Source: Macrostomum lignano (lineage: Eukaryota). Taken from it: a stretch of DNA of 64,000 nt. The translations under genes and the position numbers were made by a program. A model generated the notes under the pieces. The model was given only the letters and a program-made list of their open reading frames with translations, did no database searches and was not told the origin of the DNA. The stretch is from NCBI GenBank assembly GCA_002269645.1, contig NIVC01001569.1, positions 62,001 to 126,000 on the forward strand, read 5' to 3'. Positions within the stretch are counted from its first letter, which is position 1; each line of letters begins with the position of its first letter. Below are positions 2,134 through 54,554 of this stretch, piece after piece.

Positions 2134-2328
2134 CCTTTTTTTAACCTTAATAGCTTTCTCCCGCGCAAATTTGCGCTGGGAAAATTGTTTCTAGACTCTG
2201 AGTTGGTCTTCAAGAAACTATATGTATGGCTGCGAAATTCTCCAGAATCTTCAGCGGCGTCCTAAGCAGGTCTCGCATGTTGGCAATTTTTTAAACCTCT
2301 TAAGTCTCCAACCTCAACTTAGTTCACC

Positions 2329-2882
2329 ATGCTGCGAATTTTCAACTTAATCCTATTGCTGTCTTTCGCCGCTAATCTGCTTTTGAAAGCGGAAGTGAAT
2401 GGAGCACCGATCGCGTTTGATGATTTAGAATTGCCATCACTCGCTGCAGACACAAAAGGTAGGCATTGCCATCGGATTGCTTAATACTGAGTGGACGGCT
2501 GGGCCAGAGTAGCTTAGCGGTGAAACGCGTCCGACTCTTGCACCAGGAGTTCCTTGGTTCGAATCCGTGAGCGGTCAAATTAATTTGTGGCTCGTCCACG
2601 AGAATTAGTCTGAGAGCCTCTCGGCCCTATGAGAAAGTCTGTGTGCCACTGGCTGGCTATATACGGATCGAATCCGATATGTATCGAAAAACAACTTTGT
2701 TTCCATTTAGAAGAATTAAAATAGGAATAAAAAGTCCTGGGTTAGCCTTTAGGCCTTCGGTGTGCCTAACAGACGAATCTCATTCTAATATCCAATTAAC
2801 AGAACTGACAAACACCGATCTGCTGCTCCGGTTGATGAAGCGTTGCCGGCTCTACGATCACCGCGCCTGCCCCATTGGCTGA
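2329..2882 (+). CDS. Cyclic neuropeptide precursor 1 (69 aa; exons 2329-2458, 2803-2882); mature peptide CRLYDHRACPIG, vasopressin/oxytocin-like (platytocin-type), no neurophysin
   Basis: MLRIFNLILLLSFAANLLLKAEVNG signal-like N-terminus, then an acidic spacer. Phase-1 intron AAAG|GTAGGC ... TTAACAG|AA joins in frame. Dibasic KR precedes C-x7-C-P-I-G, then TGA. Confidence 0.85.
2501..2640 (+). mobile_element. tRNA-derived SINE-like element in the intron of neuropeptide gene 1 (3' end uncertain)
   Basis: Consensus Pol III A box TAGCTTAGCGG (2510-2520) and B box GGTTCGAATCC (2556-2566) at tRNA spacing. D, anticodon and acceptor stems do not pair. Confidence 0.6.
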
Positions 2883-3261
2883 GCGAGTTTGCCGACAGGA
2901 GGCGCCGGGCTAAATTCCTGGAAACCATGGAGCGTATTTATTATAACAAAGACTAAATGCCTAGAAGAACAAAGACTAAGCCCGCGTGTACTAATCACTA
3001 GAATTCTATCCTGCAGATGAGACTTTAGTCTCTTTCAAATTGCAATGCGAATACCTGATATTTGATTAACTGATCGCCCGAACGTAGCTGTCAGTTTTGA
3101 ATGGAATATATAGACAAATATATACTTCGACTTCGGCTTGCCATGCATTCATCCAAGATTCTTTATTACTTGATTTATAGCTGACAAACTGATTGATAGA
3201 CAGTCTAGCTGCAAGACATGACAGTGAGACAGGTACTAAGACAGGCATTTAGACAGACAGT

Positions 3262-3893
3262 ATAGGACAGGCACTATAGGACAGGCACTATAGGACTGGC
3301 ACTTATAGGACAGGCCCTATAGGACAGGCCCGTTTCTACAAAATTGGTGGAATAAATAATCAATAAAATTACAAGCATTATCTGTTCACCGTTTTTGTAG
3401 AAACGAGCTTCTTTAGAGGATCATAAAAATTGGATACGTATCAAGGACGTTCCTGCAACCAAAAAAGTTACGTATCGGAGACGTCTCACTTTCTATTGGA
3501 TACGTAATTTTGCTGTTCGGGATAGGACAGGCACTATAGGACAGGCCCTATAGGACAGGCACTATAGGACAGGCACTTATAGGACAGGCCCTATAGGACA
3601 GGCACTATAGGACAGGCACTTATAGGACAGGCCCTATAGGACAGGCACTATAGGACAGGCACTTATAGGACAGGCCCTATAGGACAGGCACTATAGGACA
3701 GGCACTTATAGGACAGGCCCTATAGGACAGGCACTATAGGACAGGCACTTATAGGACAGGCCCTATAGGACAGGCACTATAGGACAGGCACTATAGGACA
3801 GGCACTAAAAGACAGGCACTATAGGACAGGCACTTATAGGACAGGCACTAAAAGACAGGCACTAAAAGACAGGCACTATAGGACAGGTACAGG
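3262..3893. repeat. 14-15-bp minisatellite (GGACAGGCACTATA)n interrupted by a ~190-bp insertion (about 3330-3520)
   Basis: Direct reading. Confidence 0.9.
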
Positions 3894-4268
3894 CCTTATG
3901 CTTTTTGCTTATTTGAAAGCTTTTGCAATCCTTTTGCAGTATGCAGCGAAAATAGCCGTTGAGCTTTGTTCAAGACACTCGAGATGATAATTGCCGTATT
4001 TTTTCGCTTTCATGCAGACAGAAAGTGGGTGGGTGCGAATCAAAAGAAATTTTTTAGCCAATGAGAAAAATAGGTTTAGATCTGAGCAGGCTCTAATTGG
4101 AAGAATGTGAGCTCAACAAACTGGGCCCTCATGCATGCAACCCGATTTTAAATAAAATCTTTCCAAACTGGTTGGGTCCCTTTGCTTTAAGATCCGTAAA
4201 ACGAAATCTTATCTCCTAGAAACTATACCGGTAACTTTAATTCCCAAATTAATAACAAAGAATTGCTG

Positions 4269-5258
4269 ATGAACTTCTCTATCAAAATTGGCTGGTTACT
4301 ACTGGCAGTTCTGGTGCAACTGCTCATCATGCCAACCCCCTCAGAGCAGCTTACATTGAAGAGAACGCCAAAATTCGACATTATTCCAACGGAGCAGGCA
4401 ATAGTGCATGGATTTTCAACATGGTGCGAATTTTTTCAGCATATTTTGTTTTACTTTTTATAACTTTAAAGATTTTTTAAATTAGTATTATTAAAGAATT
4501 TTGGTAGTTAATCTGATCTAGTCTTAGTAAGAAATTAAATTTTAAAATGGCGCGCATTTTCTTCCGGTGTTTAATTTGTTTATTTTTGCAATGCTGTAAC
4601 CAAACAAAATTCAAGATTGATATTTAAGTAAGCATGAGTGAGGGAAAAATTACTTCAATAAACCGGATAAAATGATTTGTTTATTAATTTGTTTGTTTAT
4701 TAATAAAATAATTTGCCATACGCAAATTAAATTTTAAAATGGCGCGCATTTTCTTCCGGTGTTTAATTTGTTTATTTTTGCAATGCTGTAACCAAACAAA
4801 ATTCAAGATTGATATTTAAGTAAGCATGAGTGAGGGAAAAATTACTTCAATAAACCGGATAAAATGATTTGTTTATTAATTTGTTTGTTTATTAATAAAA
4901 TAATTTGCCATACGCAAATTAAATTTTAAAATGGCGCGCATTTTCTTCCGGTGTTTAATTTGTTTATTTTTGCAATGCTGTAAACAAAACAAAATTAAAG
5001 ATTGATATTTAAGTAAGCATGAGTGAGGGAAAAATTACTCCAATAAACCCGATAAAATGATTTGTTTATTTGCTTTCAGAAACGAGAAACAAGGTCGGCA
5101 ATGCCCAGCCAACTCTACAGTCGTCCACCCCCGGTACATCCAACCGCAAGAACCGCCCGGATTTGCCATTTAAAAAGTCCACTGTGCCGTTTGAGAAGCT
5201 GAGCCAGCTGGAAAAGCGATGTCGCATGTTTGACCACCGGGCCTGCCCGATCGGCTGA
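4269..5258 (+). CDS. Cyclic neuropeptide precursor 2 (exon 1 from 4269, exon 2 5080-5258; junction unresolved); mature peptide CRMFDHRACPIG
   Basis: Exon 1 encodes MNFSIKIGWLLLAVLVQLLIMPTPS, a signal peptide. Exon 2 follows TTTGCTTTCAG| and ends EKR-CRMFDHRACPIG-TGA, matching gene 1 at 10 of 12 residues. The obvious donor (4424) is phase 2 while the acceptor needs phase 1. Confidence 0.7.
4532..5070. repeat. 192-bp tandem repeat, about 2.8 copies, filling the intron of neuropeptide gene 2
   Basis: ATGGCGCGCATTTTCTTCCGG recurs at 4547, 4739 and 4931. Confidence 0.95.
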
Positions 5259-5409
5259 AGGTTGCAAGCTTTGCGAACAGGAAACTCGCGCATTCCATGC
5301 GTCTCTGTAGTGTTAATTGTTCTGTATGCCATTAGCGAAATAAGTGTCCAATATTTACCTGCAGTTGTATTCCAATTGTCTGACTCTGTACTGCACAGAT
5401 TACCCATCT

Positions 5410-5720
5410 GCTTACCCAAGGGAGTTGCGACTGACTCGCGACTGAAAGGTGGTCGGGGGTTCGATTCCCGATCCCACTCGGAACAATCTGTGTTCTTGAG
5501 CAAGACACCCAACTTCAGTTCACCCAGCTGTAAAATGGGTGCCAGCATTAGCTGGGGTAATTGGGGCTGTGTGTGGCGACCCCCCCACCCCCAGTCCTTG
5601 GACTGAACAGCCGTACGCAGCCTTCAGATGCGCCGCGCAATAGCTGCGGCTGAGCTGTCGGTTGCACATCTGCCAATTTAGGGCAGGTGTTAATCAAAGA
5701 TTTATTAATCATTATTATTC
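5410..5720 (+). mobile_element. tRNA-derived SINE with a CORE-like central domain
   Basis: B box GGTTCGATTCC (5458-5468). It is followed by TGTGTTCTTGAGCAAGACAC...CAGCTGTAAAATGGG (5489-5539), resembling the CORE-SINE consensus TGTGACCTTGGGCAAG...CTGTAAAATGGG, and by a simple AT-rich tail. Confidence 0.6.
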
Positions 5721-6889: not shown

Positions 6890-9800
6890 TCAGTCAAGCA
6901 GGCAGATGCAGCCGTCGTTGGTCCCCACCGCGCAGACTCCATCCGCCCGGCAGTCGATGGCGGTGACGCAGTCGCCGAATCCCGACACAGTCGACACCGG
7001 CCGATTGAGGCTTCTGGCGTCGAAAAAGGCAACCCGACGGTCCTCGGTGCCGCAGGCGAAATCGTCGGCGTAGGATGAGGAACCGGCGCAGGGGCGGAGG
7101 CTGAGGCCGCTGCGAAGGGAGCCGCTCAGCCGGATTAGGGTGGCCGCCACCGGCCTTGAAAGGTGAGATTAATGTGGGAAGGGTGAGATGAAGGGGTGAA
7201 GGGTGAGATGAAGGGGTGAAGGGTGAGATGAAGGGGTGAAGGGTGAGATGAAGGGGTGAAGGGTGAGATGAAGGGGTGAAGGGTGAGATGAAGGGGTGAA
7301 GGGTGAGATGAAGGGGTGAAGGGTGAGGTGAAGGGTGAGATGAAGGGATGAAGGGTGAGATGCACTTGAAGAAGGGTGAGATAAACTTCATGAAGGGTGA
7401 GATGAATTCAGAGATGCCTGATATAGACTGATGGGAAGAGCAGATGAGAATGCGAGAGCTCACGACCAAGGCAGAAAATATTTTTTTTATTTGGGAAGGA
7501 TCGGAGTTGGGAAGAATGGGATTTGAAAAAAGCAGATTTAGAGAGAATGATATTTGAGAAGAATGGGATTTGGGAAGAATCGGAGTTGGGAAGAATCGGA
7601 TTTGGGAAGAATAGGATTTTGGAAGAATGGGATTTGGGAAGAGTTGGATTCGGATCAGAAAATCAAGATCTCAAGCAACGCTCACCCAGATCCGGTCCGC
7701 AGATCCCACAGCTTCACTGTGCCACCGCGGGCCGCCGTCAGAAAGGTCCACCCGGTGCCTGGCAGGACGGTAAACGCTGGCGGCCCGGCGGCTAACTGAC
7801 TGCCCGCCTCCTCAACGTAGGTTGCTAAGCAACCGGGTTGGCGCGAATTCAAATCGAATAGTCGAACAACGCGATCCGAGCAGGCGGCCAGGATGCAGTA
7901 GGAGTGCACAGAGTTCAACCCGCCGCAGGCCGTGACCTGCTGGCAGTCGGGGACGCTCAGGCTGAGCGCCTCCTTGCAGCGGCCAGCGGCGGAGCTGTAA
8001 GTCCTGACATCGTCTCGCTTCTCTGAGCCGTCGCCGAGGTGGCAGGCAAACAGGCGGATCCGGTTGCCCTGGGACAGCAGGAGGAATTTGTCCAGAAAGT
8101 AGAACTGGGCGTGGGTCAGCTCCGCCGGGCGGCACTTCGGCTGCTGGCCTAGACAGCAAAAGTAGAGGGCGGAAATGGGAGGAAGTAGACAGCGTAACGG
8201 GAAACAGTAGAGGGCGGAAATGGGAGGAAGTGGACAGCGTAACGGGAAAAAGTAGAGGGCGGAAATGGGAGGAAGTAGACAGCGGAACGGGAAAAAGTAG
8301 AGGGCGGAAATGGGAGGAAGTAGACAGCGGAACGGGAAAAAGTAGAGGGCGGAAATGGGAGGAAGTAGACAGCGGATAAAAAATGGCGAGCGGAAAACTG
8401 AGAAAGCAGAGAGCGGAGAAGCGCACCGCTGGCCCTCCTGAGCTCGCCCAGCTCCAGCAGCTGCCTGCCGGTGGCCAGACTCCACACCCGGCAAGCTCCA
8501 TCGCTGCTAGCGGTGAGCACTTTGTCTCCATTCAGGCTGCAGTCACCGGCAACAAGGGGCGCTCCGAAGCTCGCGCCAGCCAGCTGGGGACCTTGGCGCC
8601 GCTCTCTCATCGCCGCGGATCCCGGGTTCGCGCCCTCGAACAGAGCCGCTGTGCCGTTGGCGGCGCAGCACAGCAGCAGGCCGGCGTCACGTGACCGACA
8701 GAGCGGCAGCAGACGGAGCCGGGTCACCGGCGGCGATGTCCCAGCGTCGGTCGGGCGGATCGTCACGGCGATGCGGCTCGGCGCCTGCGGCTGCTGCTGT
8801 GCGGAGTTCGGCTGCAGCAGCCGCAGGAGTCGGTGGAGACTGCCGGTGCCGGAGCTTCGAGCAGGACTTGACAGCGGCAGCTTCTGCGGCGCTTGACGTC
8901 TGCGTGACGGCGGCTGCCTGGGGGCGCTGAAAGTTGCGGTTAGAGGGATGAGAGTTGAGAACAGGGAGGTGGAGTGGCACACGGGGAGCACACAGGGGAT
9001 CACACAGGGGATAACACAGGGGAGCACACAGGGGATCACACAGGGGATCACACAGGGGAGCACACAGGGGAGCACACAGGGGATAACACAGGGGAGCACA
9101 CAGGGGAGCACACAGGGGAGCACACAGGGGAGCACACAGGGGATCACACAGGGGAGCACACAGGGGATCACACAGGGGATCACACAGGGGAGCACACAGG
9201 GGAGCACACAGGGGATCACAGAGTAGAGGCCCACAGGGGTCATCGAGGGCAGTTCAAGAATCCAACAGGATGTGCAGGTCACTAACGCGGCTCCGTAGCC
9301 AGACGACTTGATTTTGTTGCGGAACGTGACGGGCTGGGAAGAATCAATCTTTCCCCGTCTGTTGAGGCCGCCGTAAGTTTTGCCTGCAACAACAAATTGG
9401 CGGCGCTGTTTGAGTTGAAATTGATTGCTGGCACACTGAGCAGCCGGAACTTCTCTATTCCAAATTTACTTACAAAATTGGACATTAGGAAAATTTTTGC
9501 ACAAACCCTTCTTATTCCTTCTTAGCATCAGTCTCATCCCTCAGCATCAATCTCATCTTCCAGCATCAATCTCATCCCCCAGCATCAATCTCATCCCTCA
9601 GCATCATCTCATCCTCCAGCATCAATCTCATCCCTCAGCATCAATCTCATCCCTCAGCATCAATCTCATCTCCCTTAGCATCAATCTCATCCCTCAGCAT
9701 CAATCTCATCCCTCAGCATCAATCTCATCCCTCAGCATCAATCTCATCCCTCAGCATCAATCTCATCCCTCAGCATCAATCTCAACCCTCAGCATCAATC

Positions 9801-11699
9801 TCATCCCTCAGCATCAATCTCATCCCTCAGCATTAATCTCATTTCCCTCAGCATCAATCTCATCGCTCAGCATCAATCTTATCCCTCAGCATCAATCTCA
9901 TCCCTCAGCATCAATCTCATCCCTCAGCATCAATCTCATCCCTCAGCATCAATCTCATCCCTCAGCAACGATCTCATCCCTCAGCATTAATCTCATCTCC
10001 CTCAGCATCAATCTCATCCTTCAGCATCAATCTCATCCCTCAGCATCAATCTCATCCTCCAGCATCAATCTCATCCCTCAGCATCAATCTCATCCTCCCA
10101 GCCTCAATCTCATCCCTCAGCATCAATCTCATCCCTCAGCATCAATCTTATCCCTCAGCATCAATCTCATCCCTCAGCATCAATCTCATCCCTCAGCATC
10201 AATCTCATCCCTCAGCATCAATCTCATCCCTCAGCATCAATCCTATCCCTCAGCATCAATCTCATCCCTCAGCATCAATCTCATCCCTCAGCATCAATCT
10301 CATCCCTCAGCATCAATCTCATCCCTCAGCATCAATCTCATCCCTTAGCAACTAGCAACGATCTCATCCCTCAGCATCAATCCTATCCCTCAGCATCAAT
10401 CTCATCCCTCAGCATCAATCTCATCCCTCAGCATCAATCTCATCCTCCCAGCATCAATCTCATCCTCCCAGCCTCAATCTCATCCCTCAGCATCAATCTC
10501 ATCCTCCCAGCCTCAATCTCATCCCTCAGCATCAATCTCATCCTCCCAGCATCAATCTCATCGCTCAGCATATCAATCTCATCCTCCCAGCCTCAATCTC
10601 ATCCCTCAGCATCAATCTCATCCTCCCAGCCTCAATCTCATCCCTCAGCATCAATGTCATCCTCCCAGCCTCAATCTCATCCCTCAGCATCAATCTCATC
10701 CTCCCAGCCTCAATCTGTAGGCAGTTCTGTTCTCTAAAAGCAAACTGCGGTCAACAGAAAAAAGAATATTTTGTCTCGCTGCCTGTAGAAAGCCATCGGA
10801 CACCGCCATTTGCGTAACCAAATTGCACACTAATCAGCTTAACAAACGCTGCTTATTAGTAAAAGCTTTTTAAAGATTATTTTTCAAACAAAAATGTTGA
10901 AATACCCTTGCCAGTCACCTCCAGGGTTCATTTTTCATCTGTGCAAGATTTCCAAGTGAAAAAGCTAAATTTTAGTTCTTCGATTGAATTAGCTTGTAAT
11001 TGCTAACTATGCTACTCGAAGTAAAATAAAGATATTTTTAACTTTTTAATATAACTTATGGAGGAAAACCGAGGCACTGACTTGAAAATATGGTTTCCCT
11101 AGCTCGAGCAGCAGATCCCGAAGTCGAGTTGGTTCCTTTCGACGCGTTGGCTCTCTCAGGCATGGCAACTGCCAAAGGTGACCCCGGATTTAGCGGCACC
11201 GTGGCGGCGAATCCCCCGATGGTGTTCAAATCGCTGTCACCATTGACAGCTTCGTTTGATCGGCAGCAGCTCAGGCTGAGCACCTGACCGCCATCGGTGC
11301 TTGAGACGACTTTCACGTCGGCAACAAACACGCTGAGCACCTCATCTTCAGTATCGTCCCCTGCTTCATCAATGTTCTCCGGGTGCCGCTGTGCTGAGAA
11401 CCTGCTCAAACCCGTGCAGCTGCTGACAATGACAGCTCGCTCGCAAATGAACTGACGAATTCCCGATGAACCCACGGCCTCGGCAAAGCTGATAAATCGA
11501 AGCTTTTGAAGCGAGGCCGCGTTCACCAGGTGAACGCCCAGCGCTGTGACCGCCAGGAGGCACCACCAGGACAGGCCGAAACCGTTAGAGGACTGGGCAG
11601 GTTGGATGAGGAATTGCGGGAGGCTGCATGATGGCCGGAGAGACAGACAGACAGTCAGACAGACAGACAGACAGACAGACAGTCAGACAGACAGACAGG

Positions 11700-11892: not shown

Positions 11893-14844
11893 CTAGACAG
11901 ACAGACAGACAGACACTAGACACACAGACAGACAGACAGACAGACAGACACACAGACAGACAGACAGACAGACACACAGACAGACCTGAGTCAGCGCCAG
12001 GGCAGCCACAGCCGCAGCGGACTCAGGGCTGAGTGCCGGTCCGGACCCGGCAGCCGCAGCTTCCAGCTGGCCAGCCGCCAGGCTGCTCCTCGCCAGCTCT
12101 CGATAGTCGCCGTCATCGCCGAGGCCAACAACGGTCAGTCGGCCGGCAGCGGAGCCGAGGTACAGCAGGTCGGACTCGGCCAGAGCGGCGGCGGTGAGAG
12201 CGGCGGGGCCGAGCACCGCGGACCGGTGCAGCAGTTGAGCGCAATGATGACCTTCTTTGTCTTCGTCGTCCTCGATGCCATCATCGCCGCTGCCCAGGCG
12301 CCACAGTTGAAAGGTGCGATCGTCGGAGATTGTCAGCAGGCGATCGTCGGGCAAGTCGATGGCGAGGTTCACCTGTTGGGAAGCCGGTTGGGTTGGCCAT
12401 AGAGTTTTCTGTATAAACATGGACATCTAATTCAGAGCCATGGACAACCACACCTAGTTCAGGGCCATGGACAACTGCACCTAATTTAGAGCCATGGACA
12501 ACCACACCTAATTCAGGGCCATGGACAACCACACCTAATTCAGAGCCATGGACAACCACACCTAATTCAGGGCCATGGACAACCACACCTAGTTCAGGGC
12601 CATGGACAACCACACCTAATTCAGAGCCATGGACAACCACACCTAATTCAGGGCCATGGACAACCACACCTAGTTCAGGGCCATGGACAACCCACACCTA
12701 GTTCAGGGCCATGGACAACTGCACCTAATTTAGAGCCATGGACACCCGGCGGTAAAAATCACGTCGAAATGACGTCGATATTCGCCTTTTAAAGACTATC
12801 GCCGAATTAGTTGTCGGTTGAACCTTCATTCGACGTCGAAATTTCGATATGAATTATTTTATCTTCTCATTTGCCAAATATATCATTTATGATATTTTAC
12901 AATGTTTTCTTCAACGTGATTGCGAGTTTACAAAATTGACCTAAAAATTCAGTACAACAGAGGTTATATTTTTTGTTTTAACTCAGCGCTAGATACGCGC
13001 ATTTTTTAAAAATATCGCCATGCGATGTCGATTTATTATTTTTGATGCCTAACTTATATACATAAATGTTTAACTTATACTTCTGTATTACGCATGGCAG
13101 CTTCTTCCTTTCAATGCATTTTTATATTTGTCGCTGTATTAATGTGTGATTGTGTGTCATAAATTGTGTGTATAATTTGGTTTAACACAATATTGCTGCC
13201 TAGAGTTTTAATCGTTTATTTATGTATAAGCGAATCAATAAAGTAGCCATAAATTTTTTTATTGTTTGTTTTGCTGCCATTGCTGTTAATTATCTTTCCA
13301 GTCAAGAGGAACAACAAAGATAATTGTTCATTTTCCTCTTTTATTTGCTTTGCTGTTATTGTTACTTCTCATTTTTTATTTCACATTTTACATTTTTGAG
13401 TGTAGTTCTAGTTAGACTCAATATCATCTTTTGTCCATTATGTCATGCTTTTGCTAGTTCTTTATCAAGGTCAAAATTGCAGAAAGTAAAGAAGTTGTAG
13501 TTTGTGTTTGTAGATGTATGTAGTTTAGTATATCAGAGCAGACCATTTTTAGTATATATATTTTGAGATTAGAGATTTAGTATAGGTGCATTTATTATAT
13601 TTAGATGTTGCCATTGATTAAGTGTAACTACTGTATTAAATGTATACTCTGTTGCCATTGCGTGTATCCGTGTATCATTGCTCACAGTTTTTCATCGTTT
13701 TTTTCTCATCGTTGCTTTCTGTTCGCAATTGCTGGATGCCGATTTCCATGATCGTTTCCAATTGCTGCTGAATTGGAATTGAACACACGGTACTATACTT
13801 TTTTCATGGTTGCAAGATTATTGCAATTTGCGCGGATAGCAAATGAAACGTCAGCCCTATTTAGCATTTTTATGCCTTAACACTTCTTTTACTGCTTAGA
13901 GTATTTCAGCGTATGAGTTATAAAACTTATGTTCCGTCAGCTGTAAGTTACGTACATGTAGTTTATGGCTAATTGTATGAAACATTGCACTAGCATATTA
14001 ATAATATTAAGTACTAGTATTAATAGCCATAATATTAAAATCGAAAATTTGTCGAAAATCGCCATTTACTTTCTGTGATCGACGAGTATAACGACGTCGA
14101 TTTTTCGCCATCAATAGTGGAAAACACGACGTCGCATACTCGACATCTGATGGCGAAAATTTCGACGTCGAAATCGTGGTTCAAATCAACATGAAATTTC
14201 GACGTCGCTTTTCGACGTCATTTCGACGTGATTTTTACCGCCGGGCAACCACACCTAATTCAGGACCATGGACAACCACACCTAATTCAGAGCAAATTTC
14301 AAAGCACCTGGGCCGAATGACCATCCAACCAGATGCCGGCAGCATCCTGATCTCTGACAGTCGAGTTCAACCGCAGCAGTAGCACTCTTCTAGTGTACAC
14401 CAACGCCAGGAACCGGGCATCGGAGAGGAACGCCAGACTGTTGGCGACTCGAGCTCCAGTCGCTATTCGTTGCCGACCTTCCACGGGATCGCCGCGGGCG
14501 TCGTTATCTGCGCACTCGTCCAGGTCCCACAGGGTCACGTGATCCTCAGCCTGGCTAGCCAGAAGTCTTGGCGCTACCCAATTGGTCAGGGCTAAACAGA
14601 CTATTGGACGCCTATGGCCAATCAGTTGCAGAGGAGTGTGTGGTCTGTCGAAGAAGTGCGTGTGTACTTTTAGCTGGCCATCCGAAGGGCTGCACCAGCA
14701 GAGGCAGGTTTCATTGGCAGCGAATGCTGACACATTGTTTAACTGGGGCGGCCCGCTGGTGTTTGGCTTGAGTAGCCAATCCTGAAATATTTTCAAGTTT
14801 CAACCTTTGCTTGACAAAAATGATACAAGTGAATGACTTTCCAT
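6890..14844 (-). CDS. WDR27: WD repeat-containing protein 27 (about 900 aa). Exons 14781-14308, 12372-11986, 11592-11082, 9383-9287, 8926-8427, 8148-7686, 7154-6890; tentative micro first exon from ATG 14844
   Basis: All seven exons join in frame at GT-AG sites. WDR27 hallmark motifs: [74 protein letters not shown]. Confidence 0.9.
7170..7650. repeat. Intronic 20-bp (GAAGGGTGAGATGAAGGGGT)n and 15-bp (GGATTTGGGAAGAAT)n arrays
   Basis: Direct reading, last WDR27 intron. Confidence 0.9.
8161..8390. repeat. Intronic 45-bp tandem repeat, about 5 copies
   Basis: AGTAGAGGGCGGAAATGGGAGGAAGTAGAC recurs at 8161, 8206 and onward. Confidence 0.9.
8979..9222. repeat. Intronic 12-bp repeat (CACAGGGGAGCA)n
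   Basis: Direct reading. Confidence 0.9.
9525..10715. repeat. Intronic 19-bp minisatellite (CAGCATCAATCTCATCCCT)n
   Basis: Direct reading. Confidence 0.95.
11640..11985. repeat. Intronic (GACA)n microsatellite
   Basis: Direct reading. Confidence 0.95.
12405..14292. repeat. 27-bp minisatellite (CCATGGACAACCACACCTAATTCAGGG)n, split by a transposon insertion
   Basis: Units run 12405-12744 and resume at 14246-14292. Confidence 0.9.
12745..14245. mobile_element. Non-autonomous TIR DNA transposon, 1501 bp, CMC/EnSpm-like (CCC...GGG ends, 2-bp TSD CA)
   Basis: Perfect 34-bp TIR CCCGGCGGTAAAAATCACGTCGAAATGACGTCGA at both ends. CA is duplicated at 12743-44 and 14246-47 relative to the uninterrupted minisatellite unit. 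Many subterminal CGACGTCG motifs and an AT-rich interior without a long ORF. Confidence 0.85.
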
Positions 14845-29100: not shown

Positions 29101-32100
29101 TTAGCAAACTCGGATTAGCAAAAATTCGGATTAGCAAACTCGGATTAGCAAAAATTCGGATTAGCAAACTTGGATTAGCAAAAATTCGGATTAGCAAACT
29201 TGGATTAGCAAAAATTCGGATTAGCTAACTCGGATTATCAGAAATTCGGACTAGCAAACTCGGATTAGGAAACAAACTAGAGGATTCGAAAATCTAGATT
29301 TAAAAACTTTAGTAAGTTAATCTTAAGTAATAAATGAGCAAACTATTTGATCACCCCAATCGCCAGTCCGAAGGCTTCTCAACCGAGGACATCAACGGAC
29401 GCTGGGTCGGCTTCTACCCCGAGATTGTCGGCGAACTTTCTCGGCGACTAAATTTTCAAGCCACCTTCAAACGCGTGAGCGACGGCCGATATGGCAGTTA
29501 CGACAACCAGACTGGCCGGTGGGACGGCATGATCGGCGACGTGTACAGCGGCGATGTGCACTTCGCCGCGGCGCCCCTCACCCTGAATGCGGTGCGCGAG
29601 GAGTTCGTGGACTTCTCACACGGTGTGCTCAACTTTGGCTTAGTGGTGAGGCCTCCAGGATACTGCTCCCACAGGGTGCACTGCGGCCCTGACTTTGTAA
29701 TCGTCGGACATTACACCAACTAACTCGTATTAGGGCACCAAATACTCTTAAGCAGCCCGGTTGTCAATGTAAACATTTTCAGGTGGTCGCCAAACCGGCC
29801 AAGTGGGTCAACACGGCCGTAGTTCGGGATGCCAAGTTTTTCCTGCGCGTCTTCGACCTGGGCGTCTGGCTGGCCTCTGGCGGGGTGTTCCTGCTGACCG
29901 CTCTGCTGCTGCACTACAATGGCAGGTGAGTGAGTGAGTGAGTAGCGAGTGAGTGAGTGAGTGAGTGAGTGAGTGAGTGAGTGAGTGAGTGAGTGAGTAG
30001 CGAGTGAGTGAGTGAGTGAGTGAGTGAGTGAGTGAGTGAGTGAGTAGCGAGTAAGTGAGTGAGTGAGTGAGTGAGTGAGTGAGTGAGTGAGTGAGTGAGT
30101 GAGTGAGTAGCGAGTAAGTGAGTGAGTGAGTGAGTGAGTGAGTGAGTGAGTGAGTGAGTGAGTGAGTGAGTAGCGAGTGAGTGAGTGAGTAGCGAGTAAG
30201 TTAGTGAGTGAGTGAGTGAGTGAGTGAGTGAGTGAGTGAGTGAGTGAGTGAGTGAGTGAGTGAGTGAGTAATTAAACTAACCAACTAATAAGTCTATCTG
30301 TACATTAATGAATCAACTAATCAAATAACAAAAAATCTGTTAATCTATCAATTAACGTAGTATTCGAAAAATCAATCAATCCGCTCGCCCCCGCACCCAG
30401 GTACAATCCCCGCGAGAACGGATCTGCCGTCAGCGATGAGTTGCGCTGTCAGAATCGGCAGCAGCGCGGCGGGCCGCCGGTCCGACCCGCCACTCTCGGC
30501 ATCGTCGGTGGCGAGTCTGGCGACGAGGATTTCGACGGTGGCGCCAGCGGCGGAGCTCCCGCTGTGGGCGGTCGAGTCTCCTTTGTGCAGACCGTATTCT
30601 ACGTTCTCAGTACCGGCTGCTACCAAGGTCAGGGTGTCACTCTGTTCGCCACTCTCTTTCCGTCACTCTTTTATCCGTCACTCTCTATCTGTCACTCTAT
30701 CTGTCACACACCATCCGTCACTCTCTGTCCGTCACTCTCTATCCGTCACTCTCTATCCGTCACTCTTTTATCCGTCACTCTTTTATCCGTCACTCTTTTA
30801 TCCGTCACTCTTTTATCTGCCACTCTCTATCCGTCACTCTCTATCCGTCACTCTATCTGTCACTCTCTATCCGTCACTCTTTTATCCGTCACTCTTTTAT
30901 CCGTCACTCTTTTATCCGTCACTCTTTTATCTGCCACTCTCTATCCGTCACTCTCTATCCGTCACTCTATCTGTCACTCTCTATCCGTCACTCTCTATCC
31001 GTCACTCTTTTATCCGTCACTCTCTATCCGTCACTCTTTTATCCGTCACTCTTTTATCTGCCACTCTCTATCCGTCACTCTCTATCCGTCACTCTATCTG
31101 TCACTCTCTATCCGTCACTCTTTTATCCGTCACTCTCTATATCTGTCACTCTCTCCATCACTCTTTATCCATCTCTCTCCGTCACTCTTTTATCTGCCAC
31201 TCTCTATCCGTCACTCTCTATCCGTCACTCTCTATCCATCACTCTCTATCCGTCACTCTCTATCCATTACTCTCTATCCGTCACTCTATCCGTCACTCTA
31301 TCCGTCACTCTATCCATCACTCTCTATCCGTCACTCTATCTGTCACTCACCATCCGTCACTCTCTATCCATCACTCTCTATCCGTCACTCTTTTATCCGT
31401 CACTCTCTATATCTGTCACTCTATCCATCACTCTTTATCCATCTCTCTCCGTCACTCTTTATCTGTTACTCTATCCATCACTCTCTATCCGTCACTCTAT
31501 CCGTCAAGCTACCTTTAACCGTCTATCCGTCACTCTATCCGTCACTCTATCCGTCACTCTATCCGTCACTCTATCCGTCACTCTATCCGTCTAGACAAGA
31601 CTCACCCGCCCCAGCTCCGGCCCCTCTGCAGGCTTCAGCAAGTGGCCCCGTTCGTTGGCGGGCCGCTGTGTCAGCGTCTTCTGGTGGCTGTTCGTCGCCA
31701 TCTTCGCCGCCACGTACAGCGGCGGATTCCTCTGCGCCCTGGTGGCCACCGAGGGCTCCAAGAGTCGGCACATGTACGCCCCCATGATCAACATCCGGGA
31801 CAGGTTCAGCTCCGACCCTGACTACCTGAAAGACTTCACGCCGGCCTGGATCAAAGGCGGCAGCACTGACCACTTCTTCGGCACCACAACTGAGGCCCTG
31901 TTCCAGCAGTTCAACCGGAAGCACCAGGCCTCTCTGAGGAAACAACCGGAACTGGACGTCTACTCCACGCGGGACCTCATCGATCTGGTGCTGCGGGACA
32001 CCCAGACCCTCGGCGTCATGGAGGCCCCCATGGCTGATTATTACGTGAAGAAGACCGACTGCGAGATCATCATCCTTGGCGACCTGACCAACGACAAGAG

Positions 32101-34053
32101 CTACGCGTTCGCCTTCGCGGAGAATTCCAGCCTGACTGGACGCTTCAACTTGGAGATTCTCCGGCTGAAAGAGTCCGGCTACATACTGGACACCTACCGG
32201 AAGTACTTCGGCTCTCCCGGCAGCCTGTGCGGCAGCAAGATGGAGGCCTCGGCGCGCAGCCAGATCTCTGAGGTTGGCGAAGTCCTGGCCAGAATGTTCC
32301 GCGGCAGCATCCCGGTGACGTTGAACAGCTTCTCCGGCCCGTTGATTTTGTACTTTAGCGGTGTCGGCCTGGCGAGCGTCGCCCTGCTGGCTGATATCAT
32401 CATCTATCACCTGTGCGAGAAGAATAAAAAGGTAATCCACTATGCTAACAATGAGTTGTCTCTAGGTAGGTATCTATCTACCATAGAATATAGTCACCCT
32501 GTCAACCGTAAAAGATTAATGGGTAAAATTGCTGAGATGTGAAGATCACTGGGGGGGGAATTGCTGAGATGTGAAAATCACTGGGGGGGAATTGCTGAGA
32601 TGTGAAAATCACTGGGGGGAATTGCTGAGATGTGAAAATCACTGGGGGGATTGCTGAGATGTGAAGATCACTGGAGGGAATCGCTGAGATGTCAAGGCTC
32701 ACAGGTGGGATTGCTGAGATGTCAAGGCTCACAGGGGGATTACTGAGATGTCAAGGCTCACAGGGGGAATTGCTGAAATGCTTTGAGCCAAAGCTCATAA
32801 AGAATATCTGATATCTTTGGCTAGATAACTTGCTTTCAGAGTGGCTGCTTTTTTCTTTAAAGATCATTTCCCCTCAGAAAATAACAATGGTGACTGTAGA
32901 ATACATTTTTATTTCTTTCTTTTTTGCAACCCCAACTGGGGGCCGCAGATTACTACTTTCTCCACTGACAAGTAGAAAGTATAGAGTTTGGAACGAAAAG
33001 TTTGCATTCCGGGCAAAGAAATAATTAATATTACTGGACGGCTGCGGGCACCCAGTTTGCAACGCCTTTGGCGACATCGTCCCGCAGAACCATTCCGCTG
33101 ACTTCTAAGCAGGCACTCATACACACGCTCACACAGGGTGTCCTGACTGTCTAGCTAATCGTCGCACGGAATCGTTAAAAGTGCTAATTGCAAGGAATTT
33201 ACAAAGCGACTAAATATGCTCGAAAAGGATATAGCTATGAGTCACACAATCTAAGCTCACTCTAACAAAAGCAGAAATTATTCAAATAATTCTAAGCTCA
33301 CTCTAACAAAAGCAGAAATTAATGTTATTCAAATAATTCTAAGCTCACTCTAACAAATGCAGAAATTATTCAAATAATTCCAAGCTCATTCAAACAAAAG
33401 CAGAAATTAATCAAATAATTCTAAGCTCACTCTAACAAATGCAGAAGTTATTCAAATAATTCTAAGCTCATTCAAACAAAAGCAGAAATTAATCAAATAA
33501 TTCTAAGCTCACTCTAACAAATGCAGAAGTTATTCAAATAATTCTAAGCTCACTCTAACAAATGCAGAAGTTATTCAAATAATTCTAAGCTCACTCTAAC
33601 AAACGCAGGAATTATTCAAATAATTCTAAGCTCATTCAAACAATAAAAGCAGAAGTTGATCAAATAATTCTAAGCTCACTCTAACAAATGCAGAAATTAT
33701 TCAAATAATTCTAAGCTCACTCTAACAAATGCAGAAGTTATTCAAATAATTCTAAGCTCATTCAAACAAAAGCAGAAATTAATCAAATAATTCTAAGCTC
33801 ACTCTAACAAATGCAGAAATTAATCAAATAATTCTAAGCTCATTCAAACAAAAGCAGAAATTAATCAAATAATTCTAAGCTCACTCTAACAAATGCAGAA
33901 GTTATTCAAATAATTCTAAGCTCATTCAAACAAAAGCAGAAATTAATCAAATAAATCTTTCAGCCAAGCAGACGCAGCAGTAATTTTCATCGAAAAGTGA
34001 CGGAATCTACGGCAAACATGTCACTGACGGCGGCACCAATGTCGGAGGACTAA
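25682..34053 (+). CDS. Ionotropic glutamate receptor-family protein A lacking the amino-terminal domain (about 548 aa). Exons 25682-25721, 26581-26648, 29367-29645, 29783-29925, 30401-30627, 31632-32431, 33964-34053
   Basis: Exons join in frame (1647 nt). The signal peptide leads directly into S1 ([41 protein letters not shown]), then M1, pore loop, M3, S2 ([24 protein letters not shown]) and M4. Exon 2 and the last exon are less certain than the core. Confidence 0.85.
25732..26106. repeat. Intronic (TCTG)n
   Basis: Direct reading. Confidence 0.95.
26695..26912. repeat. Intronic 22-bp repeat (ATTTACAGTAGTGCTGTATGTC)n
   Basis: Direct reading. Confidence 0.9.
27288..29275. repeat. Intronic 14-bp satellite (AAACTYGGATTAGC)n, about 140 copies
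   Basis: Direct reading. Confidence 0.95.
29926..30270 (+). repeat. (GAGT)n microsatellite starting at the GTGAGT donor site
   Basis: GGCAG|GTGAGTGAGTGAGT... Confidence 0.95.
30640..31590. repeat. Intronic ~14-bp repeat (CTATCCGTCACTCT)n
   Basis: Direct reading. Confidence 0.95.
32527..33955. repeat. Intronic ~28-bp (GGAATTGCTGAGATGTGAAAATCACTGG) and ~40-bp (AATAATTCTAAGCTCACTCTAACAAATGCAG...) arrays
   Basis: Arrays at about 32527-32780 and 33255-33955. Confidence 0.85.
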
Positions 34054-36012: not shown

Positions 36013-41450
<5,438 letters not shown>

Positions 41451-41954: not shown

Positions 41955-45980
<4,026 letters not shown>

Positions 45981-50200: not shown

Positions 50201-53200
50201 TCTATCCTACACATTCTATCCTACAGATTCTATCCTACACATTCTATCCTACACATTCTACCCTACACATTCTATCCTACAGATTCTATCCAACACATTC
50301 TATCCTACACATTCTATCCTACACATTCTATCCTACACATTCTGTCCTTCTCATTCTATCCTACACATTCTATCCTACACATTCTATCCTTCAAATTCTA
50401 TCCTACAGATTCTATCCTACACATTCTATCCTACACAGCCCCATTCTATCCTTCACATTCTATCCTACACCACCCAATTCTATTCTACACATTCTATCCA
50501 AAACGTTCTATCTTACACATTCTATCCTACACATTCTATCCTACACATTCTATCCTACGCATTCTACCCTACACATTCTATCCTACAAATTTTATCCTAC
50601 AGATTCTATCCTACACATTCTATCCTACAGATTCTATCCTACACATTCTATCTGACACATTTTTTTCCTACACATTCTATCCTACAGATTCTATCCTACA
50701 CATTCTATCCTACACATTCTATCCTACAGATTCTATCCTACAGATTCTATCCTACACATTCTATCCTACAGATTCTATCCTTCACATTCTATCCTACACA
50801 TTCTATCCTACACATTCTATCCCACAGATTCTATCCTACAGATTCTATCCTACACATTCTATCCTACACCACCCCATTCTATCCTTCACATTCTATCCTA
50901 CACCACCCCATTCTATTCTACACATTCTATCCAAAACGTTCTATCTTACACATTCTATCCTACGCATTCTACCCTACACATTCTATCTTACAGATTCTAC
51001 CCTACACATTCTATCCTACAGATTCTATCCTACACAGCCCCATGCTATCCCGGAGCTCTCACCCAGCACCATCGGCTTTGTCAGCCTCCACCACATTGCC
51101 GCATCAATTGGCGAATGGACCAGCTGAAACCCGTCGATCACGGAGAAGCCACGCCGTCTCACCGACCGCCCGGCCAAGGCGGGCACGTCGAAAAAGTCGG
51201 ACCGCAGCTCGTCGTTGATGCGCGCCCAGCTGACCGAGGCGGAGAAGCTGGTCGCGTTCAGTGCAGCTCGGCAGGAGGCCCTCAGGCAGGAACTCAGACT
51301 GAAGAGTGGTTAAAGAGGATAACAGACAGGTTCGTTTTTATGTTTTTTAACTCTAAAGGCCAGTTTGTGGCCTGCATGGTTCGCCAGGAATCGAAACCAT
51401 GAACTTCTGTGCAGGAGTTGAACGTGTTACCGTTGATATTCTCCCTTCATCTCGCCCCTTCACATTCTCCCTTTATCTCATTCCTTTATTTTCTCCCTTC
51501 ATCTCATCCCTTCATATTCTCCCTTCATCCTCCTTTTATCTCCCTTCATCCTTTATGTTCTCCCTTCATCTCATCCCTTCATATTCTCCCTTCCTCTCTT
51601 CCCGTCGTATTCTCCCTTTATCTCTTTCCATCATACTCTCCCTTCATCTCCTCTTTTCCTCTCTTGCCTCATCTGATCTACACATTGGTCTGGCATATAT
51701 TCTTGCCGGCGTTCCCCCTCAAACATTCTGTCAAAGTCAAATCCCCAATTAGTTGAACATCAAATTACTCACCGCCTGTCCATATCAACAGCGCCTCTCA
51801 ACGGCTGCTCAGCATTAAGAGGCGGACTTGACAGCCACAGCTTGTGGAACAGGTGGTCGTACCGGCCGGACTGAGCCATGCCAAGGACCACCGACGCGCT
51901 GGAACCGAAACCGACGAGAACCACCTGGACGGGTTGTGAGAAAGAGAGAATAATAATACTGAATAATTAGGGCTAAGCTGACCCCTACAACAAGATTTAT
52001 TATCATGAATATGATTTGGTCTAATTAGCTGATAATTAAATCATAGAATGCATAATTATGGCTGCCATCTATTGCAGTCAAACCTACAATGGCTAATAAC
52101 TTGGGTTTTCTAATTCCAATACTTTCAGGACCAAGCTATACTCTCCAGTTCTATCCTGCTGTACCCAATTTATCCTAATCTACTCTCCTTATCCTCACAC
52201 TCTGAGACTCTACCCCATAATCTACCCCCATACCACACTCCATACTCTACCACATACTCTACTCCCATACCAAACTCCATGATCTACTCCCATACCAAAC
52301 TCCATACTCTATTCCATAATTCACCCCATACTCCAACCCATGCTCTTACCCCATACTACACTCCATACTCTACCCCATACTCTACTTACATACCACACTC
52401 CATGCTTTACTCCAGTAGCAAACTCCATACTCTATCCCATAATCCATTTCATACTCCACCCCATACTCTTACTCCATACTACACTCCATACTCTACTCCA
52501 TACTCCACCCCATACTCTACCCCTCACTCTACCCATACTCTACCCCATACTCCAACCCATACTCTTACCCATATTACACTCCATACTCTACCCCACAATC
52601 TACCCCATACCCTACCCCACAATCTACCCCATACTCTACCCCTCACTCTACCCCATACTCTACCCCATACTCTACCCCATACCCTACCCCACAATCTACC
52701 CCATACTCTACCCCACACTCCACCCCATACTCACATTATCCGGCGCCCCGCCGAAGGCTCTAACATTGATTCTGAGCCAGCGCAACGCCTCGGCCACGTC
52801 ACTGATGGGCAGATTTCCGGCCACCCTGTTCGGTGACTCGTCCGTCAGGTCCGGGTGGACGACGAAGCCCAGCGGACCCAGCCGGTGCCGGACAGACGCC
52901 AGCACGAAGCCTGAGGCCACCAGACTGTCGGGCGGATTCAACAGCAGACTGGGAGGCGAGTAGATGCTCAACAAGCTTGACAGCAGCACTACTGTTGGCA
53001 GGTTGGCTCCGGGCTTCTCTGCTGGAGTTGCCAAGTCCAGGTACAGGCAATCTGTGGAGCCCTCCAAACCAGCTGTGGGAGAATCTCCCATGCCAGCGTA
53101 CTGCAGACACATCGGGACTGCATCAGCGCTGTGCGGGTACCGGAGCCTGCGCTGATGCCAAGCCGTGTTAGCTTCCTCTGACGTCATCGCCCAGACCTCT

Positions 53201-54554
53201 CGGCAGGCTGTCTGGCTGTCAATGGGCTGGGCTGGCAACAGCAGCCTGGTGCCATTGGGTCTCAGGGCGTAGGGGATCCCGGTGAACCTGTACACCATAG
53301 CTGAGCCGCTGCCAGTCACCGAGGTGGCCGTTAAAACCCCGCACGTCGTTTCTCGTCGAGTTCCGCTTGCTTCCCGGCGTCTGTTGTCGGCATTTCTGGC
53401 GGCAGCTGCGGCTTGAAGACTCTGCTGATAGTGACGATTGCTGACCAGGACTGTGGGCAGGGTGATGACTAGGATGACAGCTAGCGCTATTAGAAGCAGA
53501 ATTATTGCAGCCAGAATTAGTCTGGGCCGGCTGGATAGGAACCCGGATTTCTGGTTGTCCTGCTGGTCCAGCCAGTAGCTGCCAATTGCATCCGTGGAGC
53601 TCTCGCCTGGCGGCTCCGAGTTGAAGGCCACTTTGGGGCCCGAGACAGTGAACACGGGCAGATCCTGCGGCCTCTGCTGCTTGCTAGAGGAGTTCTCGAA
53701 AAAGTTCTCCGTGCTCTGCTGGCGGCGTTTGAAAGAGAATGGAGTGACAGTGAGAGTGACAGTGGGAGTGACAGTGACAGTGACAGTGGGAGTGACAGTG
53801 ACAGTGACAGTGACAGTGGGAGTGACAGTGGGAGTGACAGTGGGAGTGACAGTGGGAGTGACAGTGACAGTGACAGTGACAGTGGGAGTGACAGTGGGAG
53901 TGACAGTGGGAGTGACCGTAGGAGTGACAGTGACAGTGACAGTGACAGTGACATTGTGAGTGACAGTGAGAGTGACAGCTAGAGTGACAGTCGTAGTGAC
54001 AATAGGAGTGACAGTAGGAGTGACAGTAGGAGTGACAATGGGAGTGACAGTGGGAGTGATAGTAGGAGTGACAGTAGGAGTGACAGTAGGAGTGACAGTG
54101 GGAGTGACAGTAGGAGTCACAGTGGGAATCACAGTGGGAGTCACAGTAGGGAGTGACAGCAGGAGTGACAGTAGGAGTGACAGTGGGAGTGACAGTGGGA
54201 GTGACAGTAGAAGTGACAGTAGGAGTGACAGTAATATTGACAGTAGGAGTGACAGTAGGAGTGACAGCAAGAGTGACAGTAGGAGTGACAGTAGGAGTGA
54301 CAGCAAGAGTAACAGTGATCGTCACGACAGGAGTGACATCAGGAGTGACATTACAAAGTATTGCTTTGAGCACTTACTAGCTGATAGTCGGGGTTCGCAA
54401 TGCCCCTGAGTGTGCCATCGCTCATAGGATCCGCGTAGGAGAATCTCTGAGTCGCCACCTGCTTGTTTTGCTTCTGCTGCAGCTGCCGCTGATGCCTTCC
54501 GTTGCCATAGCGACCGGAGAATCCGCCGTCGTCAGGTTCGTAGTTATTTGCCAT
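47202..54554 (-). CDS. Catalytically inactive type II membrane carboxyl/cholinesterase-like protein, neurotactin-like (726 aa). Exons 54554-54378, 53718-52735, 51924-51773, 51298-51063, 48689-48487, 47630-47202
   Basis: Exons join in frame (2181 nt). A cytoplasmic N-terminus and one TM helix ([21 protein letters not shown]) precede type-B esterase motifs [40 protein letters not shown]. The nucleophile elbow reads GFGSS instead of GESAG. Confidence 0.85.
47720..48450. repeat. Intronic 7/14-bp repeat (TCAGGTGTCAGATA)n
   Basis: Direct reading. Confidence 0.95.
48770..51040. repeat. Intronic 14-bp satellite (CACATTCTATCCTA)n, about 2.3 kb
   Basis: Direct reading. It produces the 600-947 aa artefact ORFs. 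Confidence 0.95.
52140..52730. repeat. Intronic 12-bp repeat (CTACCCCATACT)n
   Basis: Direct reading. Confidence 0.9.
53742..54345. repeat. Intronic hexamer/12-mer repeat (GTGACA/GGAGTGACAGTA)n
   Basis: Direct reading. Confidence 0.95.

Follow-up and report, generated by a model that had tools for sequence, protein, structure and literature searches.

Neuropeptide precursors are usually recognised by a conserved peptide located beside divergent spacers, and a dibasic Lys-Arg (KR) site in combination with a C-terminal Gly represents the canonical substrate layout for prohormone convertases and peptidylglycine alpha-amidating monooxygenase. A single C-terminal cyclic peptide positioned behind a dibasic site is found in the precursors of somatostatin, allatostatin-C and urotensin II, as well as in the contryphan precursors of Conus. 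The excitatory peptide (EP)/CCHamide family comprises the protostome relatives of GRP, neuromedin B and endothelin. Here, we describe a locus in the genetic model flatworm Macrostomum lignano that contains two short, KR-flanked peptide-coding stretches with two cysteines each. The locus lies in a 64,000-nucleotide stretch of contig NIVC01001569.1 (assembly GCA_002269645.1, positions 62,001 to 126,000, forward strand), referred to as the window, and all coordinates below are window positions. The first stretch belongs to a unit termed gene 1 and the second to unit 2, both on the + strand. The neuropeptide complement of flatworms has been described as poorly sampled (PMC13551398).

EP/CCHamide peptides typically have two cysteines, with an aromatic residue and in many cases a His between them, as well as a GG/GA tail and an amide. 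There is one copy per precursor, immediately following the signal peptide, although in rare exceptions a short spacer intervenes (PMC6617912). In the lophotrochozoan members, eight residues separate the cysteines and the tail is GGN-amide (PMC12969411). Within the vasopressin/oxytocin (VP/OT) family, platytocin is described as conforming to the neurohypophysial motif, with a precursor that clusters among the spiralian VP precursors; VP/vasotocin precursor genes have also been reported for M. lignano itself (PAA85176.1, PAA50340.1, PAA46766.1 and PAA87831.1), in which Kobayashi et al. did not find a clear receptor of the VP/OT type (PMC8896804). Strongly divergent vasotocin paralogues are found in the spiralian nemerteans, where the neurophysin and the post-signal position are kept and the cysteines are lost (PMC8557429).

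The two peptide-coding stretches of the M. lignano locus are closely related. Copy 1 (2838-2882) reads AAG CGT TGC CGG CTC TAC GAT CAC CGC GCC TGC CCC ATT GGC TGA and translates to KR-CRLYDHRACPIG-stop, with KR at 2838-2843, the peptide at 2844-2879 and TGA at 2880-2882. Copy 2 (5214-5258) reads AAG CGA TGT CGC ATG TTT GAC CAC CGG GCC TGC CCG ATC GGC TGA and translates to KR-CRMFDHRACPIG-stop, with KR at 5214-5219, the peptide at 5220-5255 and TGA at 5256-5258. The pattern common to both is KR-CR[L/M][Y/F]DHRACPIG-stop, giving a 12-residue peptide after KR. In each copy KR immediately precedes Cys1 and Gly immediately precedes TGA, in keeping with the layout of a dibasic convertase site and an amide donor, and Leu occupies both P4 and P7 of the Leu-x-x-Leu-x-Lys-Arg site. 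These positions, the strand and the translation bear out an earlier, purely sequence-based reading of the window, referred to as the original prediction. A six-frame regular-expression scan of the window found C-x7-C-P-x-G, DH[RK]AC and [KR][KR]C...G-stop at only two sites, which are these peptides, while C-x4-C-P-x-G does not occur in any of the six frames.

The copies differ at 11 of 42 bases, distributed 1/1/9 over codon positions 1, 2 and 3. When compared codon by codon, seven codons are synonymously different and two residues have changed (L/M and Y/F), exactly as predicted. The Nei-Gojobori estimates are 0.88 for pS, which is saturated, and 0.077 for pN, and 11 random substitutions led to two or fewer residue changes with P = 5.5e-5 (200,000 trials). 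While the DNA identity of the peptide stretches is 74%, the 60 bases before KR are 25% identical and the 60 bases after the stop codon 22% (ungapped), which is the random level. The spacers of the two copies are unalignable, and conservation is bounded precisely by KR and the stop codon. Purifying selection is confined to KR and the peptide; the proposal that it acts on the peptide alone is thus supported by the low pN relative to pS, the unalignable spacers and the random flanks.

A screen for paralogous stretches, defined as at least 12 of 14 residues identical at a DNA identity of at most 80%, returned two locus pairs in the real window: the peptide pair and a 93% DNA repeat at 42.9/43.4 kb. 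The latter is explained by DNA identity, leaving the peptide pair as the sole other match in the window, and comparable pairs were found in none of 100 dinucleotide-preserving shuffles of the window. Hence, the observation of a paralogous pair of peptide-coding stretches, both subject to purifying selection at the protein level, is solid, given the third-position bias, the substitution test, the random flanks and the lack of any match in the shuffles. A chance origin of the pair is ruled out by the shuffles and the substitution test, and an origin as a DNA repeat or transposon by the presence of two copies only, their limited DNA identity, the third-position differences and the random flanks. 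The repeat that was recovered alongside the peptide pair is a direct repeat of 258 bp on the + strand (42894-43150 and 43389-43645), with partial copies extending up to 43918.

Judged from its sequence, gene 1 is a clean two-exon preprohormone-like model (Table 1). Translation starts at ATG 2329, the donor AAG|GTAGGC after 2458 scores 8.4, and the acceptor ttaacag|AA at 2803 creates a G|AA junction encoding Glu. The resulting product of 69 aa, MLRIFNLILLLSFAANLLLKAEVNGAPIAFDDLELPSLAADTK-E-LTNTDLLLRLM-KR-CRLYDHRACPIG, is in frame, and with a good donor and a usable acceptor the two-exon model of the original prediction holds for this copy. The N-terminus contains Arg3 and a 16-residue uncharged hydrophobic stretch (I4-L19), followed by LKA|E with Ala at -1. 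A rule-based signal-peptide test was passed by gene 1 and 8 other open reading frames (ORFs) in 128 kb of strand, and several of these 9 are low-complexity repeats. Codon-usage log-odds, trained on ~2,270 codons from other coding ORFs of the window, are +6.9 for exon 1 in the proposed frame compared to -17.6 and -8.6 in the other two; for exon 2a they are +4.1 and positive in the proposed frame only. Peptide 1 forms the last 12 residues of the precursor, behind KR and a spacer at least ~34 residues long. A start-like motif, ATG-x-TGCGAA-TTT, is present in two further copies 5' of the gene 1 start on the + strand (2226-2295, by eye only). One is ATGGCTGCGAAATTC (2226) and the other ATGTTGGCAATTTTTTAA (2277), the latter forming an upstream ORF of 5 codons.

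In a word-indexed protein search with the gene 1 precursor, three shared 5-mers were found in 0 of 5.8 billion proteins, and a Pfam scan at E <= 10 returned no family, including neither Hormone_4 nor Hormone_5. A sequence search of the PDB gave no match, and two scans of a metagenome collection with degenerate back-translated patterns gave 0 matches. The synteny route, by way of the neighbouring minus-strand exon, likewise yielded no homologue. The peptide strings are absent from 8.3 million searchable full texts and from the planarian prohormone supplements.

We consider that the locus probably encodes a duplicated pair of secreted, ring-closed, amidated signalling peptides of an orphan family, specified by small tandem duplicates of the preprohormone type. 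In the proposed mechanism, a short secretory precursor would enter the secretory pathway by means of its N-terminal signal peptide, and a prohormone convertase would cut after the Lys-Arg directly preceding the last 12 residues. The two cysteines would form a nine-residue disulfide ring (C-x7-C), while the terminal Gly, as last residue before the stop codon, would be used by peptidylglycine alpha-amidating monooxygenase. The predicted products, CRLYDHRACPI-NH2 and CRMFDHRACPI-NH2, would constitute closely related ligands, most likely of a peptide G protein-coupled receptor. Their computed masses as disulfide amides are 1342.639 Da and 1344.600 Da respectively, and those of the Gly-extended disulfide forms 1400.644 and 1402.606 Da. 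We infer signal-peptide cleavage, KR cleavage, disulfide formation and amidation, as well as neuronal or endocrine expression, the cell type and the receptor class. The peptides are apparently undescribed and can be assigned neither to VP/OT nor to EP/CCHamide. The duplicated two-ligand cyclic peptide system of the original prediction is hence retained as a duplicated, KR-flanked, Gly-terminated pair with two cysteines, and the VP/OT label attached to it is not.

Several points weigh against this interpretation. The signal peptide is a rule-based prediction. A secreted peptide of non-neuronal origin would leave the same sequence signature. As assembled, copy 2 lacks its own signal-peptide exon in frame with the peptide. 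Finally, no homologue was found beyond the locus among 1.84 billion representative proteins, Pfam, the PDB and the metagenomes, and the conservation evidence therefore consists of the two paralogues only.

Table 1 Features of the two peptide units, ordered by window position.
Feature	Position	Strand	Description
Block A, unit 1	2207-2223	+	TCTTCAAGAAACTATAT; 106 nt 5' of gene 1 ATG
Block B, unit 1	2323-2343	+	TTCACCATGCTGCGAATTTTC; includes gene 1 start codon 2329
Gene 1 exon 1	2329-2458	+	MLRIFNLILLLSFAANLLLKAEVNGAPIAFDDLELPSLAADTK + first base of Glu codon; signal-peptide-like N-terminus, acidic spacer
Gene 1 intron	2459-2802	+	344 nt, phase 1; tRNA-like fragment, B-box 2556-2566
Gene 1 terminal coding exon 2a	2803-2882	+	(E)LTNTDLLLRLM-KR-CRLYDHRACPIG-TGA
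Block D, unit 1	2888-2900	+	TTTGCCGACAGGA; 6 nt after stop
Block A, unit 2	4212-4228	+	TCTCCTAGAAACTATAC; 14/17 match to unit 1
Candidate exon 1 of unit 2, original prediction	4269-4423	+	MNFSIKIGWLLLAVLVQLLIMPTPSEQLTLKRTPKFDIIPTEQAIVHGFST..
Block B, unit 2	4415-4435	+	TTCAACATGGTGCGAATTTTT; paralogue of gene 1 start block
Alternative candidate exon 1 of unit 2	4421-4503	+	donor TTG|GTAGTT after 4503, score 2.7
192-bp tandem repeat	4532-5070	+	2.8 copies, 98% identity; fills unit 2 intron
Unit 2 terminal coding exon 2b	5080-5258	+	(E)TRNKVGNAQPTLQSSTPGTSNRKNRPDLPFKKSTVPFEKLSQLE-KR-CRMFDHRACPIG-TGA; phase 1
Block D, unit 2	5270-5282	+	TTTGCGAACAGGA; 12 nt after stop

The terminal exon of unit 2, exon 2b, begins at position 5080 behind tttgctttcag|AA, which with a score of 4.9 is the region's best acceptor and is in phase 1 as for exon 2a; the exon has a codon-usage log-odds of +8.8, positive in the proposed frame only. 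There is no in-frame ATG before the peptide in this exon, and an upstream coding exon is therefore needed. The original prediction presented copy 2 as a tiny two-exon gene as well, a model that fails as assembled, its best donor (4423) lying one base out of frame with acceptor 5080. The ORF at ATG 4269 starts MNFSIKIGWLLLAVLVQLLIMPTPS... and ends at the donor ATG|GTGCGA after 4423 (score 5.6), which is in phase 2 versus phase 1 for the acceptor, and the join creates a stop (TG+A). In-frame joins from this ATG require weak splice sites (4403/5094 or 4447/5087), and the candidate exon, with a codon-usage log-odds of +0.7, is in frame with 5080 if the T4 at 4413-4416 is really T3. The donor of the alternative candidate (4421-4503) resembles AAG|GTAGGC of gene 1 and its join to 5080 is again G|AA; this exon is open and in phase 1 only if the T6 at 4473-4478 is really T5, and its log-odds is -2.4. 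Three-exon models for unit 2 were discarded, with no credible splice sites in any. Use of 5080 as a trans-splice site, with the start codon provided by a spliced leader, would presumably leave the peptide out of frame.

Two further observations touch on the 5' region of unit 2. Each unit of the 192-bp repeat starts with ATGGCGCGCATTTT, a sequence similar to the block around the gene 1 start codon, and a hydrophobic ORF (MARIFFRCLICLFLQCC...) opens in it; the repeat units may be repeated remnants of exon 1, or the similarity may be due to chance in T-rich DNA. Elsewhere in the window, two M. lignano database proteins differ in frame within a single + strand exon (29783-29926) in spite of each being 100% identical to it: over 29818-29889, A0A1I8ILG7 follows frame 2 and the other protein (P0003) frame 1. 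This conflict hints at indels between assemblies or haplotypes, or else at faulty gene models, and bears on the frame problem of unit 2.

Outside the peptide, short blocks recur in both units. Block A has a chance expectation of 0.29 matches per window and is possibly a promoter element. For block B, the one other match in the window within 3 mismatches is that of unit 2 (18/21, with 0.00 expected), and the alignment score was reached in 0/500 shuffles. ATG 4421, the paralogous start in unit 2, opens MVRIFSAYFVLLFITLKIF, 19 codons followed by a stop, and overlaps the 4423|GT donor. Block D, a possible element of the 3' untranslated region, corresponds to TTTGC[C/G][G/A]ACAGGA after both stop codons, with 2 matches compared to 0.01 expected for this pattern, which was set post hoc. 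The first 15 bases of exons 2a and 2b match at 10 positions, and both exons start with AA behind phase-1 acceptors. In both units, blocks A, B and D keep the same order relative to the peptide block, and for blocks A and B this colinearity indicates that the duplication included the 5' end. The best explanation for this arrangement of sequences would be that a small gene of the preprohormone type was duplicated in tandem long ago.

A single gene represents the strongest competing explanation, which we regard as possible though clearly less probable than the duplicated pair. Exon 1 at 2329-2458 would be spliced either to 2a at 2803 or to 2b at 5080, so that one signal peptide serves two alternative terminal exons and two peptide variants, with the 5' exon of unit 2 having decayed. 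As assembled, 2329-2458 is the sole ATG-initiated signal-like exon with a phase-1 GT donor upstream of 5080, and the 2458>5080 join is in frame through the same G|AA Glu codon. Donor 2458 (8.4) and acceptor 5080 (4.9) are the strongest at the locus, and both first-exon candidates of unit 2 have near-zero or negative codon log-odds and need a base change. By contrast, the conservation of blocks A and B before 2b, despite saturated neutral sites, suggests that unit 2 has a functional 5' end of its own. A poly(A) site would furthermore be needed for each terminal exon, while no canonical AATAAA was seen by eye before ~3353. Copy 2 may thus be a separate gene affected by a one-base homopolymer error or polymorphism in this assembly, or exon 2b may be an alternative terminal exon of gene 1. 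We consider the former somewhat more probable than the latter, and a recently disabled 5' end the least probable, because conservation of blocks A and B has persisted to a divergence at which neutral sites are saturated.

By layout, the nearest known precursors appear to be those that end in a single cyclic peptide preceded by a dibasic site. The somatostatin, allatostatin-C, urotensin II and contryphan precursors likewise consist of a signal, a non-conserved spacer, a dibasic site and a short cyclic C-terminal peptide. None of their rings resembles the peptides described here in sequence, and somatostatin and allatostatin-C are generally not amidated. Contryphans share the amide-donating terminal Gly, but are venom peptides with a C-x5-C ring. 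In a further reading, with a contryphan-like layout, the pair would be secreted non-neuropeptides of gland, epidermal or reproductive-tract origin, with a defensive, antimicrobial, toxin-like or seminal/pheromonal role. The signal-like N-terminus, KR, the two cysteines and the terminal Gly fit such peptides equally well, the protein searches revealed no homologues in other animals, and lineage-restricted tandem duplicates are typical of effector genes. However, both paralogues are old and under very strong purifying selection, which is a better fit to a receptor ligand than to fast-evolving effector peptides, and there are two copies only, making a non-neuropeptide function unlikely.

Descent from the EP/CCHamide family was considered in the same manner. 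The spacing C1-x-x-[Y/F]4-x-H6 corresponds to the insect CCHamide pattern C-x-x-Y-G-H, and the seven residues between the cysteines lie between the six of arthropods and the eight of lophotrochozoans. Two cysteines, a predicted amide, a single copy and an aromatic residue (Y/F at position 4) together with a His (position 6) in the ring are likewise present in these peptides (PMC6617912). In contrast, the GGN/GGH/GAH-amide tail of the family is replaced by P-I-(G), with no GG/GA between the second Cys and the amide, and the peptide is C-terminal instead of directly following the signal peptide. The conserved Gly beside the His is replaced by Asp. Protein searches gave no statistical similarity to the family, and the features held in common are few and short. 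It is thus improbable that the pair represents divergent flatworm members of the EP/CCHamide family.

The existing annotation raises the question of whether the 14 conserved residues could be the C-terminus of a larger or otherwise different protein, or of an unprocessed small protein, or whether unit 2 is a recently disabled pseudogene. A HMMER search of 1.84 billion representative proteins, using a profile of both terminal exons, found UniRef100_A0A1I8ILG7 and one low-complexity match. A0A1I8ILG7 is a 797-aa M. lignano 'Lig_chan-Glu_bd domain-containing protein' that is colinear with 2804-30623 of the + strand and 100% identical to the window in several exons. This model translates exon 2a out of frame (TDKHRSAAPVDEALPALRSPRLPHWL...) and joins it to the exon at 5080, making use of that acceptor, and then exits exon 2b inside the peptide (…EKRCRM|). 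It continues through + frames across 6.9-14.6 kb, a region in which the long ORFs are on the minus strand, takes in a coiled-coil exon at 17.1 kb, and ends in exons of a glutamate receptor (29.4-30.6 kb). A0A1I8ILG7 is a chimeric gene model. As it is the sole overlapping database protein, current annotation misses both peptides, which agrees with the expectation that genes of this kind escape standard annotation: one terminal exon is misread and the other truncated. While this model does thread exon 2b into a long protein, and unit 2 as assembled is without an in-frame first exon, the chimeric nature of the model with exon 2a out of frame, the exact limits of conservation at KR and the stop codon, and the complete, in-frame gene 1 leave an unprocessed or disabled origin very improbable.

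Consideration of the VP/OT family leads to an even firmer negative. The platytocin-like label given to the locus was assessed by the published description of that peptide. Both copies end in C-P-I-G-stop, comparable to the C-P-x-G tail with amide-donor Gly of VP/OT peptides (with amidation here inferred from that Gly), and the C-P-I-G itself is identical to the tails of mesotocin, isotocin, cephalotocin and octopressin. A disulfide ring, here predicted, and one peptide per precursor are also common to both. In contrast, the VP/OT ring spans Cys1-Cys6 (C-x4-C, 6 residues) and contains hydrophobic or aromatic residues at positions 2-3 and Asn5, while the ring here is C-x7-C, 9 residues, and reads R-[L/M]-[Y/F]-D-H-R-A with no Asn. 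The VP/OT peptide is found right after the signal peptide and is followed by GKR and the cysteine-rich neurophysin (Pfam Hormone_5); the peptides described here are C-terminal, after a spacer and KR, with no GKR, and the precursor ends at the Gly. The C-x7-C ring, retained tail, C-terminal position and lack of neurophysin had all been noted in the original prediction, and are confirmed by translation and the Pfam scan; of these features the C-P-x-G tail alone supports the label. As a Gly is required for any amide, Pro is the one informative residue of that tail. Furthermore, M. lignano is reported to have its own VP/vasotocin genes and no clear receptor (PMC8896804), and the nemertean paralogues, in keeping neurophysin and losing cysteines, show the reverse of the pattern that would be needed here (PMC8557429). 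We therefore regard it as highly improbable that the pair are derived VP/OT-type ligands in which neurophysin was lost and the ring expanded from six to nine residues with the C-P-x-G-amide tail kept. The same slight probability applies to a previously unrecognised VP/OT-descended flatworm signalling system, with the tail kept and the peptide placed at the C-terminus of a mini-precursor, existing beside the reported VP/vasotocin genes.

If the reading as a duplicated pair of signalling peptides is correct, the two strongly conserved cyclic amides would offer ready candidates for efforts to deorphanise receptors, as well as for studies using transgenesis or RNA interference. Should exon 2b prove to be an alternative terminal exon, the locus would instead provide a compact case of ligand diversification by terminal-exon duplication. 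In either case it illustrates how automatic annotation can lose or mangle small precursor genes. The present evidence has no bearing on the origin of VP/OT signalling. We expect the locus to be of use to flatworm neurobiology and to annotation, and to surprise the wider field only if a receptor or orthologues link it to an ancient family.

Micro- and minisatellites are very abundant in the window as a whole; examples are (AG)n (918-1825) and an array of a 19-mer (9524-10716). A 14-nt minisatellite (43-nt higher-order) with the unit ATAGGACAGGCACT forms two arrays between the peptide units (3228-3329 and 3522-3887), which flank a unique stretch of ~190 bp. The B-box-like sequence GGTTCGAWTCC occurs twice in the window (0.02 expected): one copy lies within the intron of gene 1, the other 200 nt 3' of exon 2b. 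The corresponding tRNA-like fragments on the + strand (2497-2575 and 5420-5500) are mutually unalignable and unrelated, neither is called by ARAGORN/Rfam, and they are probably SINE (short interspersed nuclear element) or tRNA-derived relics.

Further along the window, long minus-strand ORFs between 7682 and 14796 (e.g. 14299-14796, 11893-12426, 11056-11526 and 8149-9282) resemble the exons of one gene interrupted by minisatellites, for which neither a Pfam match nor a homologue in the word-indexed protein search was found. Two convergent ionotropic glutamate-receptor-like genes are located at 29334-32542 (+) and 36342-39622 (-), with Pfam matches to Lig_chan-Glu_bd and Lig_chan, and minisatellites adjoin or fall inside the ORFs of both. 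The database matches of the ORF at 31655-32542 are M. lignano proteins only, with P0003 being 97-100% identical to the window exons. A carboxylesterase-family ORF (Pfam COesterase, E = 1.7e-23) is found on the minus strand at 52708-54306, with a repeat rich in Thr, Val and Pro preceding it. The + strand contains an ORF of the TEX33 family (E = 1.3e-14) at 56780-57379.

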